DNA of 64,000 bases. Source: Podarcis vaucheri. Lineage: Eukaryota. The DNA lies in NCBI GenBank assembly GCA_965113315.1, contig OZ220376.1. The stretch is one strand, 5' to 3'. Shown one piece after another: positions 38,919-60,834 of this stretch. Both the position numbers and the translations under genes were made by a program. The notes beneath the pieces were generated by a model, which did not search any database, was not told where the DNA came from, and saw only the letters and a program-made list of their open reading frames with translations. How positions within the stretch are numbered: position 1 is the first letter of the stretch; the number at the start of each line of letters is the position of its first letter.

Positions 38919-40343
38919 ATGGACCGCTTTGCCCACTCTGGAACACAGACAGATGCCGTGGTGGTGCTGTCTCTGGCCCAAGCAGCCGTCCTGGGCTTGG
39001 TGACTGAGAACGAGTTTTTTGGTGCCACCGTCAGCCCCGGAGGTTTCTTCTCCAGCTTCGCGGGCAGGCTCGACGGCATGTCCATGGTTGAGTTGAAGCA
39101 GCCGGAAAGCCATTGCCCTCTGGATAATGAAGGCCAAGGTCACATCGAGCCAGCGGAGGAGGATGAAGCAGCAGAGGCTTCCTTCGGGAAACATGCCAGG
39201 AGGAGGAAGCGCCCGCCTGTGAGGCTGGTGCCAAAAGTGAAGCCCGAGAAGGGGGAGTGGGGGCAGGAGGACGGCGCTTACGAAGCATCAGTAGCAAGTG
39301 AGGGCAAGGAGGAGCAGATGGGCAGCCACCCTGTGAGCCTGGAGGAGTCCCCCTGTGAGCAGACGGTGCAGAGCAGCACTACCAAGATGATAGATCTCAG
39401 CACGTTCAACAGGAAGCCTCGACGCCTGCGGCACCTGCGACAGCAAGCCCCAGAAGAGCTGTCCCTGGGCGGGTATGAGGAGAGGCTCCCAAGCACCCCA
39501 CAAGCCACCCTGGACAGCACTCCGGGGAGTGCAGAGGCCTTCTCCAGTGACTGCGGCTTCCAGGCTGGTGCTCCACCTCCCTTGATCAATCTGGAGCATC
39601 CTGTACCACACTCTCCTCCGGGGCAGGGCAAGAGTGAGCTGGGCTTTGTGTGGCAGGAGCCCCTGGAATTTGAGGCGGAGGCCCATGGCGAGCACAGCAA
39701 GAAGGTTCAGCTGGACCGCCTGGACATCAACGTCCAGATAGATGACTCCTACCTGGTGGAGAAGCGTTGGCNNNNNNNNNNNNNNNNNNNNNNNNNNNNN
39801 NNNNNNNNNNNNNNNNNNNNNNNNNNNNNNNNNNNNNNNNNNNNNNNNNNNNNNNNNNNNNNNNNNNNNNNNNNNNNNNNNNNNNNNNNNNNNNNNNNNN
39901 NNNCCCACCTGCTCACCCACCAGGGCACACGGCCCCACAAGTGCCAGGTGTGCCACAAGGCTTTCACCCAGACCAGCCACCTTAAGCGCCACATGCTGCT
40001 GCACTCCGACATCAAGCCCTACAGCTGCCGCTTCTGTGGCCGCGGCTTCGCCTACCCCAGCGAGCTGAAGGCCCACGAGGGCAAGCACGAGAACGGGCGC
40101 TGCCACGTCTGCGTTGAGTGCGGCCTGGACTTCTCCACCCTCACCCAGCTCAAGCGCCACCTGGCCACCCACCAGGGGCCCACCCTCTACCCCTGCCCAG
40201 AGTGCAACAAGTCCTTCCATTATCGCAGCCAGCTGCAGAACCACATGCTCAAGCACCAGAACGTGCGGCCTTTCGTCTGCACCGAGTGTGGCATGGAGTT
40301 CAGCCAGATCCATCACCTTAAGCAGCACTCGCTGACCCACAAG
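38919..40343 (+). CDS. ZNF710: ZNF710 first coding exon (acceptor at 38888; contains N-gap 39772-39903)
   Basis: Polypyrimidine tract + cctgcag|ACAAC; gagccATGG; ends HSLTHK|GTAGGC. Confidence 0.95.
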
Positions 40344-41959
40344 GTAGGCCAGGCAGCAGAGCACCAAGTTGAAGGGCATGAGGGGGGCTGTTGGATAACC
40401 AAAGCCTTTTCCCATCCGTGGCTCTAAGGGCTTTTATTAAGGAGTATGTGTGTGTCTACCTGCAGTGCCCTGAAGGGGTACCCAAAGGGTTTCACCTTAG
40501 CTGGCTTGCTGTTTTTGTTGTCCTCGGGTCACCACAGACCTGGATTCTGAAAAAGAGGCCTTGCCACAATTTGGGTTAAAACTGCTTCCATAGGAGGGAG
40601 GGAGTGGGGATCCAAAGTGCCCTGGTCTCTTCCCCCTTGCTCTGAAATCCCCCAAACACTACTGAGCATGAAATCACCGTGGTTAGCACTGTCCTCCTTG
40701 GCCAAGGTGGGATAGGGTGGTACCTCTTGGCTGCAATGAAGCCTTGTTACCTGCCTGCTGTTGTCTTCAGGGCGTGAAAGAGTTCAAGTGTGAAGTGTGC
40801 GGGCGAGAGTTCACGCTGCAGGCCAACATGAAGCGCCACATGCTGATCCACACCAGTGTGCGCCCCTACCAGTGCCACATCTGCTTCAAGACCTTTGTGC
40901 AGAAGCAGACACTCAAGACCCACATGATCGTCCACTCGCCCGTCAAGCCCTTCAAGTGCAAGGTAGGTGGCAGAAGTGCAAAGAGCAGAAGCTGCCATGG
41001 GTGGTGGACTATGAAGAGCCTGAGATCAGGGCAAAACGGAGTGGCAGAGGCTGCAAAGACAGGCCAGACTCAACTCCCAGAGTGGCAGTGGTCATTTCCA
41101 GAACAGACTTCCCACATAAGCAACATATCCACCCTCCTCTCAAGCACAGCTTAGTCATTCCGGTTTTGCCAGCTGCCTGGACTGAGCCCGGAAATTATTT
41201 TGCTGACGGCTTTCAGAGCTGAGTGTGGAGTGGATCCTGGTTCTTTGCCATTGGCCTGGAAGGGCAACTGGGGTGGATGCAGGCAGGTGAATCCCACCCC
41301 TGCTGCCCACAGTCCAAGCTGCCCCAGCCTCTGCCGACAGGTGATCATCTCCTTTTCCCACCCCACCTTCCGCAGGTGTGTGGGAAATCCTTCAACCGCA
41401 TGTACAACCTCCTGGGCCACATGCACTTGCACGCAGGCAGCAAACCCTTCAAGTGCCCTTACTGTTCCAGCAAGTTCAACCTGAAGGGCAACCTCAGCCG
41501 GCACATGAAGGTCAAGCATGGGGTGATGGACATCAGCCTGGACAGCCAAGGTAGGTGGAGTGGGGAGGGAGCTGGAGGGATGGGTCTAAGGCATCCTACC
41601 CCCCCCCCCCAAGCCCTGAAAGGCAGAGGCAGCCTTCTCATGCTGAAAGGCTGCACTGCAGCTCCCTCTGCAGGCTGTCTTGGCTTGCTGGCAAAGGAGG
41701 CTGTGGTGGCCAGTGCTGAATCCACATTGCCTGCCATTGCAGCACTACCGCCCAGGTGCTGCTCACTTCTTGTCCTGTTGTCCCCTCAGATCCGATGCTG
41801 GAGCTGGCAGGTGATCATGCAGAGCTGGACGGACAGCAGGAGATGGAGGACTACGAGGAGGAAAACTCGTATGACTATGGGGTGGTGGGGAACCCTGCCA
41901 ACGAGTCTGCCTTGACCGAACACGCCATGAAGGAAATGGCCTACTACAGCATGTTGTAG
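38919..41959 (+). CDS. ZNF710: Zinc finger protein 710; join(38919-40343,40771-40962,41376-41550,41790-41959), about 653 aa
   Basis: N-terminus SGTQTDAVVVLSLAQAAVLGLV, LDRLDINVQIDDSYLVE, a tandem C2H2 array, and C-terminus AMKEMAYYSML*. Splice sites are canonical and exon lengths 1425+192+175+170 stay in frame. Confidence 0.96.
39772..39903. other. Assembly gap (132 N) inside the ZNF710 zinc-finger exon
   Basis: Run of N; reading frame preserved across it. Confidence 0.99.
40771..40962 (+). CDS. ZNF710: ZNF710 coding exon 2
   Basis: ttcag|GVKEFKCEVCGREF...VKPFKCK|GTAGGT. Confidence 0.95.
41376..41550 (+). CDS. ZNF710: ZNF710 coding exon 3
   Basis: cgcag|VCGKSFNRMYNLLGHMHLH...MDISLDSQ G|GTAGGT. 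Confidence 0.95.
41790..41959 (+). CDS. ZNF710: ZNF710 last coding exon
   Basis: cctcag|(D)PMLELAGDHAELDGQQEMEDYEE...AYYSML*. Confidence 0.94.
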
Positions 41960-43115: not shown

Positions 43116-50839
<7,724 letters not shown>

Positions 50840-55979: not shown

Positions 55980-57882
55980 TTGGTGACCAAAAGTTTCTAG
56001 TCTGCATTAGAGTCCTCTTGTGGTTCTTACTGTGTCTTATTGCTGCATGGTGATTTTATTTAATTTTTGTCATTGGCATCTGTGTGTTCCAGACTGGAAG
56101 AGAGGTGGGAAGGAAAAGTCGCAAACAAGCAGAAATAATCTCAGAAGCTTCATGGGGGATATTGATCAGTGAGAACAAACAGGCACCCAAATGCAGAATA
56201 GCCAATGGTCAGGGGAGATGGGAATTGTCCAAAAACATCTGGAGACCCCCCACGGGATACCCCTTCCTACCCAAAGGGCTCCCCATACAGAAAGGAACAC
56301 CTGAAAAAAAGGAGAAATTAAATACTTAGTGGGATGGAATGGGACATAGCATCAGTTGGAGAGCAGAGCAGGAAAGAACAGCCCAGGAAACAAGCAAACA
56401 AAGCTAACCCATGACTTCTCTTGAACTTATAACACATGATAAGCTTCTAAGCTTGACCACTCAGACAGCAGTTAAATGAGGTCCAGGCAACTCTTAAACA
56501 AACTGCAAACATAGGAGATAGCACAGCTGAGCTGCAGAACAAAGTACACGATGCGTTGTAAAAATATAAATGAAGAGTATCTCAAACAAGAAGACCTTGA
56601 AAAAGATGGCCACCAAAAGCTTCATTTTCTGACTTTGCTAAAGCAGTAGGGGGTTCAGGCACAGAAATCTCCCTTGGAAGTTGACTTGGCCAGCTCCTGG
56701 AACTGGAAGAAATGGGCAAGGCCTCCATGCACTGAAGGTAAGTCCTGAGCAGGCTTGGAAGCTGGTGCCCCTGAGCCCTGACATGTCTGCGGCCTCCACA
56801 ATAAAGCATACACCATCTTTCTCCTCTCATGGAGAAGCAAAGATCCCAGTGGAGGGGACTTGCAAGATTTATGCACAATAAAACAAAGGAGACAATATTA
56901 GCTGAAGCCAGAAAAAAGTTGCTCACTCAAAGAATTGATTCTACAAACTCCTTATTCCTGAAAAATATTTTTATACCACCCTTCATTAATAATACCATGG
57001 TGGTTCAAAACAATGCAATTATATTAAAACTGGTACATTAAAATATATACAGTAATAAAATACATCACAGGCCAGCCAGATGTCACCCAAAAATGCCTTC
57101 TGGGTTGACTTCAGCAAGCAGGAAAAGCCCATCAACGCTGGTGCCTTATTTCAAAGGAGAGGCCATTCCAGAAGCTGGGTGCCACAACAGAAAAGTCCCT
57201 TATTTGGGTTGTTGCAGGAAGGATCTCAGCACATACGCAAGACAAGCTCATCCGAGGATCCTTGAATTGGGCTGGTGCATACAGGAGAAGGCCTTCCTTC
57301 AGGTTCTCTCACTTCATTTATACATCAAGAATAAGAAAGATAAGCACAATATTTAAGGAAACAGTTTTTTATCATCATCATCCATTTTGCATACAGAAGG
57401 TCCTAGGCCCAATTTCTGGTGGCATTTCCAGGTAAGGATGGGAGATAACCCTGCCTGAAACCCTGGAGAGCTTCTGCCAGTCCGTGTAGACAGTGCTAAG
57501 CTAGATGGAACAATAGTCTGCCTCTGGGAAGGACACTTGCTGTGTCTCTGTTACTTTTTCTCTCTCCGTTTTGTCTTTTGCTTCACAACCGGCCTGGAGA
57601 GGAGGCCTGGAGAACCTGGAATCTCCCTCCCTCCCTCCTGCCCTTTCTCTTAGTGAAGTGGTTGCTCTCTTGTGGTTTGGAGGTGTTCTCTTCCCTGCAA
57701 GAACCAATACAGCTCAGGACACATTTTGCTCTTTAACCTTCGTTTTCTTTGGCTGGTTTTCTTGGCATAATTCTTGGTGGGTTTGAGCTGGAAGCCAAAG
57801 ACAGTCAATGTTGCTTTCCTTTCTTCTGCTGCTGGCATTTCGCCAAGGAAGATCACTGGAACAGACACCTGTCCTTGTAGGG

Positions 57883-58760
57883 CATGGGTTGGCAAACTAA
57901 GGTCCGCGGGCCAGTTCAGGCCCAATTGCCTTTTAGATCCGGTCTGCGGACGGTCCGGGAATTCAGACAGTCAGAGTAGTGCGAGAGCGCGCATGATGGT
58001 TTTTGTGACTCAGCCAGGCTTGGGGGTCAAAAGTGAGGCTAGTGGCTGCTCAAGACAAGACCCTTCTTCGTCCTCATGCATGCGCAGCAACCATATCTTC
58101 CAGGATTGGGGGTGGGGAAGAGGGAAAAGGATCCAGAGTTTGGATTTCCACCATGGAGCTGCCGGCAATTGACCTCAGGAAGGGCAGTTGCGGCAGCAGG
58201 GGCTTGAAGGCGCCTCGGGAGCGATGCCCGCTGGTGTCTGTGGCGGCAGTGCTCCCCACCAAAGGAAGCAGGGAGCACCTGGGAGGCTGCACTCCAAAGC
58301 AGTTCTGCGCTCTGCTGGGGAGGCCGCTCGTTAGCTACACGGTGTGAGCCATGGAAAGGTAAATAGCCGTCGCCGCCTTGTCTTCCCTCACGCAGGGAAA
58401 AGAACATTTTTGCTTGAGCGGCACTGGCCTGACTTAGCGTGGCCAACGGCTTTTCCCTGCACACACATGCACACACGCTCTCCAGGGCTGACAGAAATGG
58501 CACACTTACCTCAGCCTCCCACCCTGCCTTATGAGAGAAATAATAACTGTCAACGATTAAAACGCAAATGAAGCAGTGTGGGTGTATGTGGGAACACCCC
58601 CCCAAAAAAAAAAATCACATTTGGGCAACGTTGGGGTTGGTCCCAATAAGGGTTTTTGCCAGAAATGTGGGTCATAATCATGGCGACATAGAGTCCGGCC
58701 CCCTACAAGGTCTGAGGGACAGTGGACTGGCCCCCTGCTGAAAATGTTTGTTGACCCCTG
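57883..58760. mobile_element. Non-autonomous hAT (Charlie-type) DNA transposon carrying captured host sequence (Pack-TIR)
   Basis: Imperfect TIRs CATGGGTTGGCAAACT / TGTTTGTTGACCCCTG; 8-bp TSD TTGTAGGG (57875-57882) / CTGTAGGG (58761-58768); GGCCC-type subterminal motifs; no transposase ORF. Confidence 0.85.
58153..58358 (+). pseudogene. CRPPA: Captured, decayed copy of CRPPA (ISPD, CDP-ribitol pyrophosphorylase) coding exon 1
   Basis: ccaccATGG...[41 protein letters not shown]|GTAAAT resembles vertebrate ISPD [41 protein letters not shown]. It has an in-frame TGA at 58345 and a phase-2 donor, and no downstream exons are in the window. Confidence 0.85.
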
Positions 58761-58946
58761 CTGTAGGGGCTTCTCTGGATGAACAAAGGCGCCCCTCCAG
58801 GTACCAACCGCCTTATAGGGCTCCATGCGCATCCCGCCATTGCCCGCCAGAGGCCGCTGCTTCCTCGCTCCGTGGCAGCGCCACTTGCTTTCACCTTCGG
58901 GAATCCCTTCGCTTAATTCCGCATTCTGGAAAATCCTCCCTGCAGG

Positions 58947-58963
58947 AGCGCCCCCTGGAGGGC
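58947..58963 (-). promoter_or_regulatory. Candidate CTCF site
   Basis: GCCCTCCAGGGGGCGCT on the minus strand. Confidence 0.5.
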
Positions 58964-58989
58964 ATTGATCGAGTTGCATAAGGAAATGG

Positions 58990-60340
58990 AAGGAGCGGTC
59001 TCTGCCCGCAAGCGGCTTACAATCATCCTAATAGGCAGCAGGGAATGCTATGGGCGGGGGAGGGGAAGGATTTGAACTCGACCCAACCTGGGAGCGGGGA
59101 GGAAGCCAAAATCGGGGGGCGGCGCTCCTGCTGCTGTCTTCAATGCAGCCCTGGGGGGTTGCCGCTGCTCCGAGCGGTGGTCAGAAGGGAATCCCGCTCC
59201 CCCCCTGCCAAGAATCAGACCCGCACCTCTCCCTCTTCCACTTCCCCTGACAGAGATTAACGCGCGCCTTGTCCGTTTCCTCCACTGATTTGGCCAGGAA
59301 CCGACAACGGGGGGCGCAGGGGGGGGGGTCTCTCTTGCTGTTTGAAAGGGACCTTATTTTGCAGCATCTTCGGCTGACCGGGGTGAGGGTCGTGCTTACC
59401 TGGCATAGGGATAGGAGGCGATTCTGTCCTGGGGGGCTGGGTGACATTTCGGGGTCCCGCCCCCTCCCCAACCTCCGAGCAGCCCGCCACACCCCCGCCT
59501 CTGCATTGTGTGGACCCCTCCCCGTATTCAACCCCCCCCATCGCCTCCCTTTCTTGATGTCACCAGTTGGTCTGGAAGCACCGCCCCGAACCCTCCCCCC
59601 ACCCCGACGGCGCCCCGCGATTCCGGCACAGACAGGGAGGGACGCACCACAAAGAAAGGCGACGGCGGGCCACGGCAGGAGAGGCTGGGGCCGGGGAGAA
59701 GGGGTCGCGTCTGTGCAGGAGGTGAGAGAGAGAGAGGCGGGCGGGCGGGCCGGGGGTGTCTCTGCCTACAAAGGCTGGCTCTGTGACGGGACTCAGCCCC
59801 GAGACCTGTTAGCAGGCAAGACAGACAGTGCCTCTGCCCATGTGCCGAGAGTCTTTTTCCCCGGCAGAGGCAGGACAGGCGGAGGGAAGCCCCTTTTCCC
59901 TGGCACAATAGCGCGCCAGGAATTTTGCCCCCCCCCCAAGAGAAAGCCCCTGCAGTTATCATCGAAATTTAGCGTGGGAGCGGCAAAGGCATTTTATATA
60001 GCTAAAGGGCTTCCGAGATTTGGGGTGTGTGTATGGCCGTCTGAATGGCTCTTTTCAACATTGGAGGGTCGCAGGTGATGGCCCCTCTGGCGCCCCCCCC
60101 CCCCAAGTTTAGCCTTAGGCTGGTGATGTGACAACCAACAGAGCTTGTAACGGAGCTGGGACTGACCCCTCCTGAACTCTGGGGTTCAGTCGTGGACCTT
60201 GGCAAGCGAAACAACCTGATGCCCACGTGCCCCACCCATCTCAGCAAGGCGCTGGACCAGACCCCCGGTCACCCCACAGCCAGCCCTCAAGGGCCACCCT
60301 GAGGCAAGGAGAGGAAGGCATCACAAGCGGGGTTCGAATG
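58990..60340. promoter_or_regulatory. Orphan CpG island, possibly the promoter of the next gene (SEMA4B by human synteny; no coding exon seen)
   Basis: CpG/GC-rich with GC boxes; donor-like sites on both strands (59400 minus, 59721 plus). Confidence 0.5.
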
Positions 60341-60834
60341 CCCCCCCACCATATCGCCTGCATTTGCAAAACCCTTCATCTGCTGTTCCCCCACACCAGG
60401 CTGTGCTGCCAATCTGGGCACCCATTAACAAATGTTTGTATCTGTCTTGGATAGAGCATGCTTGCCAACTCAGATTTTGCCACAGAAGCTGTGAACAAAA
60501 GTGCATTTCGGAAGGACTGTCTGCCACAGGGGGGTGGCGGAGAGAGAAAGAGAAAGGGAGGGAGGGAAAGAAAGAGAGAGACTGTCCCCCCAGAACCCTA
60601 GGAGAGCACCTGCTTTATAGGAACATAGTTTTTTTTATTGCTTTTATATTCAATCTTGTTCTCCAGTGAGTTCAAGGTATGGTTCACTCCTCCTCAATTA
60701 ATTCTCTCAAACCTGAGGCTCCATCTGTTGTTGTACTACAACTCCCACCATTCCTAGCTAGAGCACCTGTGGTCAGGGATGATGGAAGTTGTAGTCCAAC
60801 AACAGATGGGGACCCAAGTTTGAGAAACACTGGA

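Follow-up and report, generated by a model that had tools for sequence, protein, structure and literature searches.

The 878-bp insert at 57883-58760 is very likely a non-autonomous Buster/Charlie-type hAT transposon, which carries about 600 bp of the 5' end of CRPPA (ISPD), copied as DNA. The cargo consists of upstream sequence, the complete first coding exon with its donor, and some 230 bp beyond it, the latter being probably the start of intron 1. The window, that is, the whole stretch of DNA analysed, covers 64,000 nt of Podarcis vaucheri (GCA_965113315.1, contig OZ220376.1), and all coordinates refer to it. The insert is intergenic, with IDH2 on one side and the next plus-strand gene on the other. 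Its neighbours in the window are C2H2 zinc fingers (40.7-41.9 kb) and minus-strand IDH2 exons (44.5-49.2 kb). The features of the insert and its target site are as follows:

57875-57882, no strand: left target site duplication (TSD) TTGTAGGG, which fits nnnTAnnn and matches 58761-58768 at 7/8 positions; single-copy flank (bin 57640-57773, depth 34 in X1).
57883-57962, plus strand: left hAT end, with the TIR CATGGGTTGGCAAACT and a subterminal GC-rich palindromic motif (inverted repeat I5, 57902-17 / 57936-51).
57963-57995, plus strand: variable linker from the left end to the cargo, found in few copies (5-9 contigs at 57963).
57996-58152, plus strand: cargo part 1, homologous to the CRPPA 5' flank / 5'UTR ahead of the start codon; residues 7-54 of P0047 align to 58012-58152, and CpG observed/expected is 0.19.
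58153-58358, plus strand: cargo part 2, decayed CRPPA coding exon 1, with a Kozak ATG, an in-frame TGA (58345-58347), and its end at the donor AG/GT.
58359-58590, plus strand: cargo part 3, non-coding, after the donor GTAAAT and co-amplified with the exon (depth 1730-1975 in X1, as for the exon); no exon-2 match and no Pfam match.
58591-58687, plus strand: C-run/A-run and a 70-odd-bp segment, missing in many related copies (joints 58612-58615 to 58688-58720 in five single-depth X1 contigs).
58688-58760, plus strand: right hAT end, with the terminus ...TGTTTGTTGACCCCTG, from a MITE-like family of very high abundance (bin 58712-58845 has a summed depth about 26,000-fold that of the flank).
58761-58768, no strand: right TSD CTGTAGGG, followed by single-copy flank (depth 32.9 in X1 in the bins from 58846 on).

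Host-gene-derived, non-TE sequence lies between two TE ends, as in a Pack-TIR. As judged by sequence comparison, 57996-58359 derives from CRPPA. Residues 7-123 of Podarcis raffonei CRPPA (P0047) aligned to 58012-58359 with 69% identity in tblastn (E=3e-39), and human ISPD (4cvh_A) was matched with E=3.5e-7; the likeness to CRPPA/IspD exon 1 proposed in the initial annotation was thereby borne out. P0047 is an N-terminally extended model, and its MVF.. sits at 57996 in another frame. The start codon at 58153 has the context ccaccATGg. Its frame reads MELPAIDL...VSYTV, then TGA (58345-58347), then AMER, and is followed by the splice donor AG/GTAAAT at 58358/58359. The Kozak ATG frame ending at this donor had been described before and is present, with the stop codon in frame ahead of the donor. 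Searches with the ORF used the 64 codons ahead of the stop; the 4 codons behind it are too few for a search. The exon copy is identical to Podarcis CRPPA exon 1 at 55/69 positions, with no indels; lacertid CRPPA is nearest to it, and the CRPPA of other squamates shows indels. The Pfam IspD profile was matched at positions 1-35 of 221, with 14.1 bits vs a cut-off of 27. The glycine motif AGGSGER reads TKGSREH in the window copy, and the stop codon is a CGA>TGA change at CpG. No complete IspD + ISPD_C open frame is found, given the stop, the altered glycine motif, and the lack of further exons.

The good Kozak ATG, the 64-codon open frame, and the consensus donor might suggest the first exon of a true CRPPA gene or a processed CRPPA retrocopy, but these readings have practically no probability, and they are refuted by the absent downstream exons and the multicopy state. 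The frame is interrupted by TGA and its catalytic glycine motif is altered. Motifs of CRPPA exon 2 or later were found nowhere in the window, which agrees with the earlier view that this is not the true CRPPA gene. The window is not the CRPPA locus, because it carries the C2H2 zinc-finger gene and IDH2. On other contigs, Podarcis has a full-length CRPPA whose exon 1 is intact. The reptile CRPPAs proper continue with I(S/N)WISD directly after exon 1, and the Podarcis CRPPA has its intact exon 1 and then ISWISD.... The P0047 match stops at ..AMER, where exon 1 ends, whereas a retrocopy would run on into exon 2 and not into GTAAAT. Since the match ends at the exon-1 boundary, with GT next and exon 2 missing, DNA-level capture rather than retrocopying is indicated, as had been proposed. 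The segment 58359-58590 is then probably the start of CRPPA intron 1.

The termini of the insert, CATGGG... on the left and ...CCCCTG on the right, are of hAT type. Both have the short-TIR form (C/T)A(G/A)NG, with CATGG... at the left end and, read as the reverse complement, CAGGG... at the right end. The reverse complement of the right terminus TGTTTGTTGACCCCTG, CAGGGGTCAACAAACA, is identical to the left end CATGGGTTGGCAAACT at 11/16 positions. The extended end-to-end alignment is weak (score 28 vs 18.6 +/- 3.8 for shuffles), and the insert boundaries 57883 and 58760 are fixed independently of it. In the contigs of three related species, the flanks are single-copy up to 57882 and from 58761. 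In all three, the flank contigs end about 30 nt into the insert on either side (57911/57912 and 58729-58731), which is normal where k=31 assemblies run into a repeat. On the right, 232-292 contigs per genome diverge exactly after 58760; their flank consensus starts GTCTAGAG (GTC-TA-GAG), with TA at positions 4-5.

An 8-bp TSD, as in the hAT superfamily, lies at the repeat boundaries set by the three-species contigs, with a 7/8 match; it was read for the copy in this window, the Logan contigs breaking inside repeats. With the boundaries fixed, the chance of a 7/8 octamer match is about 4e-4. The TSD reads TTG-TA-GGG, which matches the Buster-clade target consensus nnnTAnnn. The ends of the insert may also resemble those of mammalian MER20/MER30-type Charlie MITEs. 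The target-site consensus of Buster-type hATs is nnnTAnnn, and the TIR of the insert is similar to that of the Buster-type Mar MITE, CAG(G/A)GGTAGGC (PMC3517528). The insert contains no transposase, because none of its ORFs, long spurious ones included, matches a Pfam family except for the sub-threshold IspD start. The initial annotation had reported an 878-bp hAT element with imperfect TIRs, an 8-bp TSD (7/8), and no transposase, and each of these points holds at the coordinates listed above.

The cargo is multicopy. Depth in X1 is 33-34 in the flanks vs 1200-1975 across the cargo. The cargo (57996-58603) is represented by 19-30 distinct contigs per site and genome (58132-58379; X1, X3, and X5, the three related species), and the hAT ends by thousands of occurrences. 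Within the window, no further copies of the cargo or of either hAT end were found, and an Rfam search over 56000-60500 matched no family. Paralogous contigs cross the exon-donor boundary and are 11-15% different from the window copy; those at 58299-58499 and 58408-58603 cover the cargo from the exon to part 3. In other copies, the left end is joined straight to 57996 (joints 57942/57947/57951 to 57996). The X15 data have a loose end behind 57962, and the loose ends before 58688 are T/C-rich. A segmental duplication is excluded by the single-copy flanks, in agreement with the previous reading.

Copies are also found in annotated proteins. A 69-aa "CRPPA" model of Podarcis lilfordi (P0001) lies on a 98-Mb contig; the contigs with the real Podarcis CRPPA are 61-64 Mb long. 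A V2R-like receptor model of Zootoca vivipara, XP_034992723.1 (P0002), contains the CRPPA-like exon in frame (residues 438-522), between the ANF_receptor and 7tm_3 domains. In the search for chimeric proteins, this Zootoca model was the one found. A repetitive 923-aa match on an ENA contig (P0003) was rejected as unrelated low-complexity noise. The first glycine of AGGSGER is replaced by K/R in each of the three extra copies, an indication that they go back to one founder. The suggestion of a multicopy squamate family is thus supported by tens of cargo-bearing copies in the three related species and by the copies in Podarcis lilfordi and Zootoca vivipara. No splice was found in the RNA-type run X15, either at the cargo donor 58358, which one contig passes unspliced, or at the left edge (57746) of a 617-nt contig.

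The assembly of these parts may be explained in different ways. It is rather improbable that the insert is a chance composite, in which a CRPPA fragment spread by another process (segmental duplication, a Helitron, or template switching unrelated to hAT) sits between unrelated MITE fragments and the unit was never mobile. The 11/16 complementarity of the ends and their roughly 20-fold difference in abundance would fit this explanation, as would the segments 57963-57995 and 58616-58687, which are absent from many relatives. However, a 7/8 TSD with the Buster TA core lies exactly at two independently set repeat boundaries, the contigs of other copies join the same left end to 57996, single-copy flank reaches the TSDs on both sides, and the cargo copies occur in at least three unrelated genomic contexts. 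The limited TIR match, the unequal abundance of the ends, and the empty-site comparison, in which the insert was present in all three related species (A, B, C) and no empty site was seen, count against a mobile hAT with CRPPA cargo.

The left-end depth is about 600 times the flank (bin 57908-58041), and the abundance of the two ends is about 20-fold apart at 80% likeness, so the ends may derive from different subfamilies. A variant of the preferred reading is a macrotransposon, in which two hAT MITEs of different subfamilies lay on either side of the CRPPA 5' end and their outer ends mobilised all between. The very unequal abundance of the ends, each with its own subterminal sequence, is consistent with such an origin, and hAT elements prefer the 5' ends of genes. 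Nevertheless, self-BLAST and a repeat search found no internal third hAT end in the window copy, and greater divergence of the left end could by itself account for the abundance gap at the 80% cut-off. The macrotransposon is regarded as an unlikely, though not negligible, variant.

For the hAT element with captured CRPPA 5' end, the following course may be proposed. A single capture event would have occurred in an ancestor of the lacertid lizards, either through template switching while DNA was repaired or replicated at a hAT, or because two hAT ends flanked the 5' part of CRPPA. An autonomous hAT transposase would then have acted in trans to move and multiply the composite. The window copy is an old, fixed, and neutrally decaying relic, with the CGA>TGA stop, the altered glycine motif, and CpG depletion, and is most likely without function. 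The element family is a portable cassette of start codon, exon, and donor; that such a cassette can be spliced into host transcripts is suggested by one Zootoca gene model.

The insert clearly exemplifies, in a vertebrate, the capture of a gene fragment by a transposon, a kind of capture that is already documented. In plants, new gene structures arise to a large extent from host gene fragments that cut-and-paste transposons have captured and spread; in animals, such capture has been thought marginal. A lizard family with tens of copies of a start-codon/exon/donor cassette shows that plant-like copy numbers are possible in an amniote. Such pseudo-exons also contaminate annotation, as in the 69-aa "CRPPA" of Podarcis lilfordi and the CRPPA-like exon of the Zootoca receptor model, and cargo copies could be taken wrongly for CRPPA paralogues. 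It is conceivable, although somewhat doubtful, that lacertids once had, or have to this day, a Buster-type hAT system by which promoter/first-exon/donor modules of different host genes were repeatedly captured, each amplified to tens of copies. If true, this would be a vertebrate counterpart of the rice Pack-MULEs at a scale unreported for animals, and it would scatter ready-made alternative first exons that host genes can splice in, an example being the Zootoca V2R-like model.

No account of a hAT capturing gene sequence in lizards came up in our literature search, and the main text of Tan et al. 2021 (Nat Commun, PMC8277862) does not mention squamates. The statement in the initial annotation that such capture is rarely described in vertebrates was overstated, since Tan et al., in the one systematic survey, reported 370 animal Pack-TIRs in 100 genomes, including 208 hAT elements; it is the multicopy state that is rare (4/370). 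The closest comparison is Pack-hAT-N8_XT of Xenopus tropicalis, which has three copies and carries 291 bp of the CAPSL 5'UTR (PMC8277862). Both are non-autonomous hAT elements with TIRs, an 8-bp TSD, and a few hundred bp of the 5' end of a host gene; the parental gene is elsewhere and the copies were spread by transposition in Xenopus, and probably so for the CRPPA element. Unlike the Xenopus element, the CRPPA element occurs at tens of copies, and its cargo holds a complete coding first exon with its donor.

The rice Pack-MULEs are described as TIR elements that capture and amplify host gene fragments, often GC-rich 5' parts, which are mostly decayed and sometimes transcribed as chimeras (PMC8277862, PMC5861414). 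The CRPPA element is similar, as a TIR element with an amplified host gene fragment. Whereas the Pack-MULEs are plant elements of the Mutator type with 9-10-bp TSDs and long TIRs, the CRPPA element is a vertebrate hAT with an 8-bp TSD and short TIRs. The Helitrons of vespertilionid bats reportedly carry promoters, 5'UTRs, and first exons at many copies, and are said to have seeded chimeric transcripts. Thomas et al. 2014 (PMC4224331) describe the amplification of captured host-gene sequence by these vertebrate DNA transposons. To that extent, the CRPPA element resembles them, as a vertebrate DNA transposon that amplifies the 5' parts of host genes. The bat Helitrons, however, are rolling-circle elements without TIRs or TSDs, whereas the CRPPA element has both TIRs and an 8-bp TSD.

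A hAT-ended unit with host cargo was found dispersed at tens of copies, one of which lies in the window. The initial annotation had described this copy as a Pack-hAT element bearing exon 1 of CRPPA (ISPD), and all of its coordinates and sequence strings for the insert were correct on re-reading the window:

57875-57882: left target-site duplication (TSD), TTGTAGGG
57883-58760: insert of 878 bp, first bases CATGGGTTGGCAAACT, last bases TGTTTGTTGACCCCTG
58761-58768: right TSD, CTGTAGGG

The hallmarks of hAT elements are an 8-bp TSD and TIRs beginning with CA(G/T)GG. The two insert ends are complementary at 11/16 positions, and their extended end-to-end alignment lies only about 2.5 SD above shuffles, so the TIRs by themselves are weak evidence. 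The ends presumably also resemble mammalian Charlie-type MITEs (MER20/MER30). The ORFs of the insert matched no transposase or any other Pfam family, and no Rfam families were found in 56000-60500. The TSD of the window copy (TTG-TA-GGG) and the family-level flank consensus (GTC-TA-GAG) both match nnnTAnnn, the consensus target site for hAT elements of the Buster clade (PMC3517528). Mar, a Buster-type MITE, has a similar TIR, CAG(G/A)GGTAGGC (PMC3517528). By these sequence features, the insert is a hAT element.

The cargo, the stretch between the two hAT ends, contains a 64-codon frame opened by ccaccATGg at 58153. A TGA (58345-58347) is followed by four codons (AMER), which end at the donor AG/GTAAAT (58358/58359). 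The 64-codon piece matched residues 6-41 of human ISPD/CRPPA (4cvh_A, E=3.5e-7) and positions 1-35 of Pfam IspD, the latter with a score under the cut-off; large protein collections yielded the true CRPPAs of reptiles and birds. A tblastn comparison of the window with P0047, an N-terminally extended Podarcis raffonei CRPPA model, gave one match only (residues 7-123 = 58012-58359, 69% identity, E=3e-39). This match takes in the coding exon and the extended N-terminus upstream of the conserved ATG (residues 7-54); the MVF.. of the model corresponds to 57996, in a different frame. The match ends exactly at ..AMER, and GTAAAT comes next in the window. In true reptile CRPPAs, the residues after AMER are I(S/N)WISD, and nothing similar to CRPPA exon 2 or later was found anywhere in the 64-kb window. 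Judged from these alignments, the cargo derives from the 5' end of CRPPA. Its stretch behind the donor, 58359-58590, is probably the beginning of CRPPA intron 1. The end of the match at the exon 1 boundary, the GTAAAT after it and the missing later exons indicate that genomic DNA was copied, and copying from mRNA is ruled out. The exon copy is nearest to lacertid CRPPA (55/69 identical, zero indels), while every other squamate requires indels, so the capture is assigned to lacertids on the basis of these protein comparisons.

Logan contigs of four public runs, the DNA runs X1, X3 and X5 (organisms A, B and C) and the RNA-type run X15 (organism C), were aligned to 56300-60300 at 80% likeness. 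X1 had the highest proportion of shared words and probably comes from the source species. The insert flanks were single-copy in 3/3 DNA runs (depth 33-34 in X1). Flank contigs stopped about 30 nt within the insert, at 57911/57912 and 58729-58731, as expected for a k=31 assembly entering a repeat bounded by 57883 and 58760. Divergence exactly past 58760 was seen in 232-292 contigs per genome, and the consensus downstream of 58760 across these contigs starts GTCTAGAG. Summed contig depth, which does not equal copy number, was distributed as follows:

57908-58041 (bin): left end, about 600x flank
58042-58577: 37-60x flank in X1, 51-69x in X3, 75-97x in X5
58712-58845 (bin): right end, about 26,000x flank

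The informative measure is the count of distinct contigs, which was 19-30 per site across 58132-58379 in each genome (X1, X3, X5). Paralogous contigs (58109-58369, 58170-58422, 58299-58499, 58408-58603 and 57996-58404) were 11-15% off the window copy and crossed the exon-donor boundary without interruption; in contigs of other copies, the left end (57942-57951) was fused directly to 57996. At the orthologous site, the insert was present in organisms A and B at both junctions, and in organism C at the right junction, with the left shown by an X15 contig over 57746-58333; no empty site was seen among the three organisms. A single capture of the CRPPA 5' end was probably followed by mobilisation of the composite in trans. 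The roughly 20-fold difference in abundance between the ends and their poor complementarity also allow a macrotransposon origin, with two different MITEs on either side of the CRPPA 5' end; however, no internal hAT end is visible in the window copy.

Other copies apparently produced two public protein annotations. P0001 (Podarcis lilfordi, 69 aa, annotated as 'D-ribitol-5-phosphate cytidylyltransferase') has 81% identity to the window copy, departs at 10/69 residues from exon 1 of the true Podarcis CRPPA, and has CGA (Arg) at the TGA position of the window copy. Its contig measures 98 Mb, while those carrying true CRPPA measure 61-64 Mb; this 'CRPPA' is the pseudo-exon only. P0002 (XP_034992723.1, Zootoca vivipara, 'extracellular calcium-sensing receptor-like') is a V2R-type computed gene model. 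Its residues 438-522 are the pseudo-exon of the element; they take in 16 codons ahead of the ATG, end in ..AMER and are spliced in frame in the model between ANF_receptor and the 7tm_3 domain. Pfam did not find the NCD3G cysteine-rich domain between these two in P0002, the sole chimeric protein found in protein searches. In all three extra copies, K/R replaces the first glycine of AGGSGER, the nucleotide-binding motif, a shared change that fits a single founder.

In the window copy, this motif is replaced by TKGSREH, the in-frame TGA derives from CGA at a CpG, and the upstream part of the cargo has a CpG observed/expected ratio of 0.19. Locus-specific X15 contigs (57746-58333 and 58305-58501) cross the left junction and are unspliced at the donor, which may reflect low read-through transcription; no use of the cargo's promoter or donor is evident at this locus. 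The neighbouring genes are as follows:

40717-41912, plus strand: C2H2 zinc-finger exon, consistent with ZNF710
44566-49171, minus strand: IDH2 exons, from protein motifs
59565-59721, plus strand: GC-rich first exon with donor AG/GTGAGA

The first two bear out the ZNF710 and IDH2 part of the proposed ARPIN-ZNF710-IDH2 synteny, and this content rules out the genuine CRPPA locus. The third, about 800 bp downstream of the insert, probably represents a non-coding first exon belonging to the next gene on the plus strand, presumably SEMA4B by synteny. A 1334-nt X15 contig starts there and exits the window at the donor, another indication that X15 is indeed RNA. Upstream of the insert, the AT-rich stretch 56968-57418 is covered by a 483-nt X15 contig (depth 46), which points to a transcript or UTR between IDH2 and SEMA4B that is not annotated. 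A second, unrelated, very abundant short repeat at 57372-57639 (core 57449-57509; summed depth about 2000x flank), with loose ends of hundreds of contigs at 57449/57450/57455 and 57492/57509, has no Rfam match and probably represents a fragment of a SINE or another TE. Beside the zinc-finger gene, 39772-39903 consists of 132 consecutive N, either an assembly gap or masked sequence.

No report of hAT gene capture in lizards was found in the literature. Pack-TIRs are documented in animals and are mainly hAT (208/370); the multicopy state is rare among them, with 4 cases, and the frog Pack-hAT shown as an example has three copies (Tan et al. 2021, PMC8277862). The CRPPA-bearing hAT is therefore of a kind already known in animals, of which it is a new and well-supported case, and its copy number makes it notable among animal Pack-TIRs, the frog element included.
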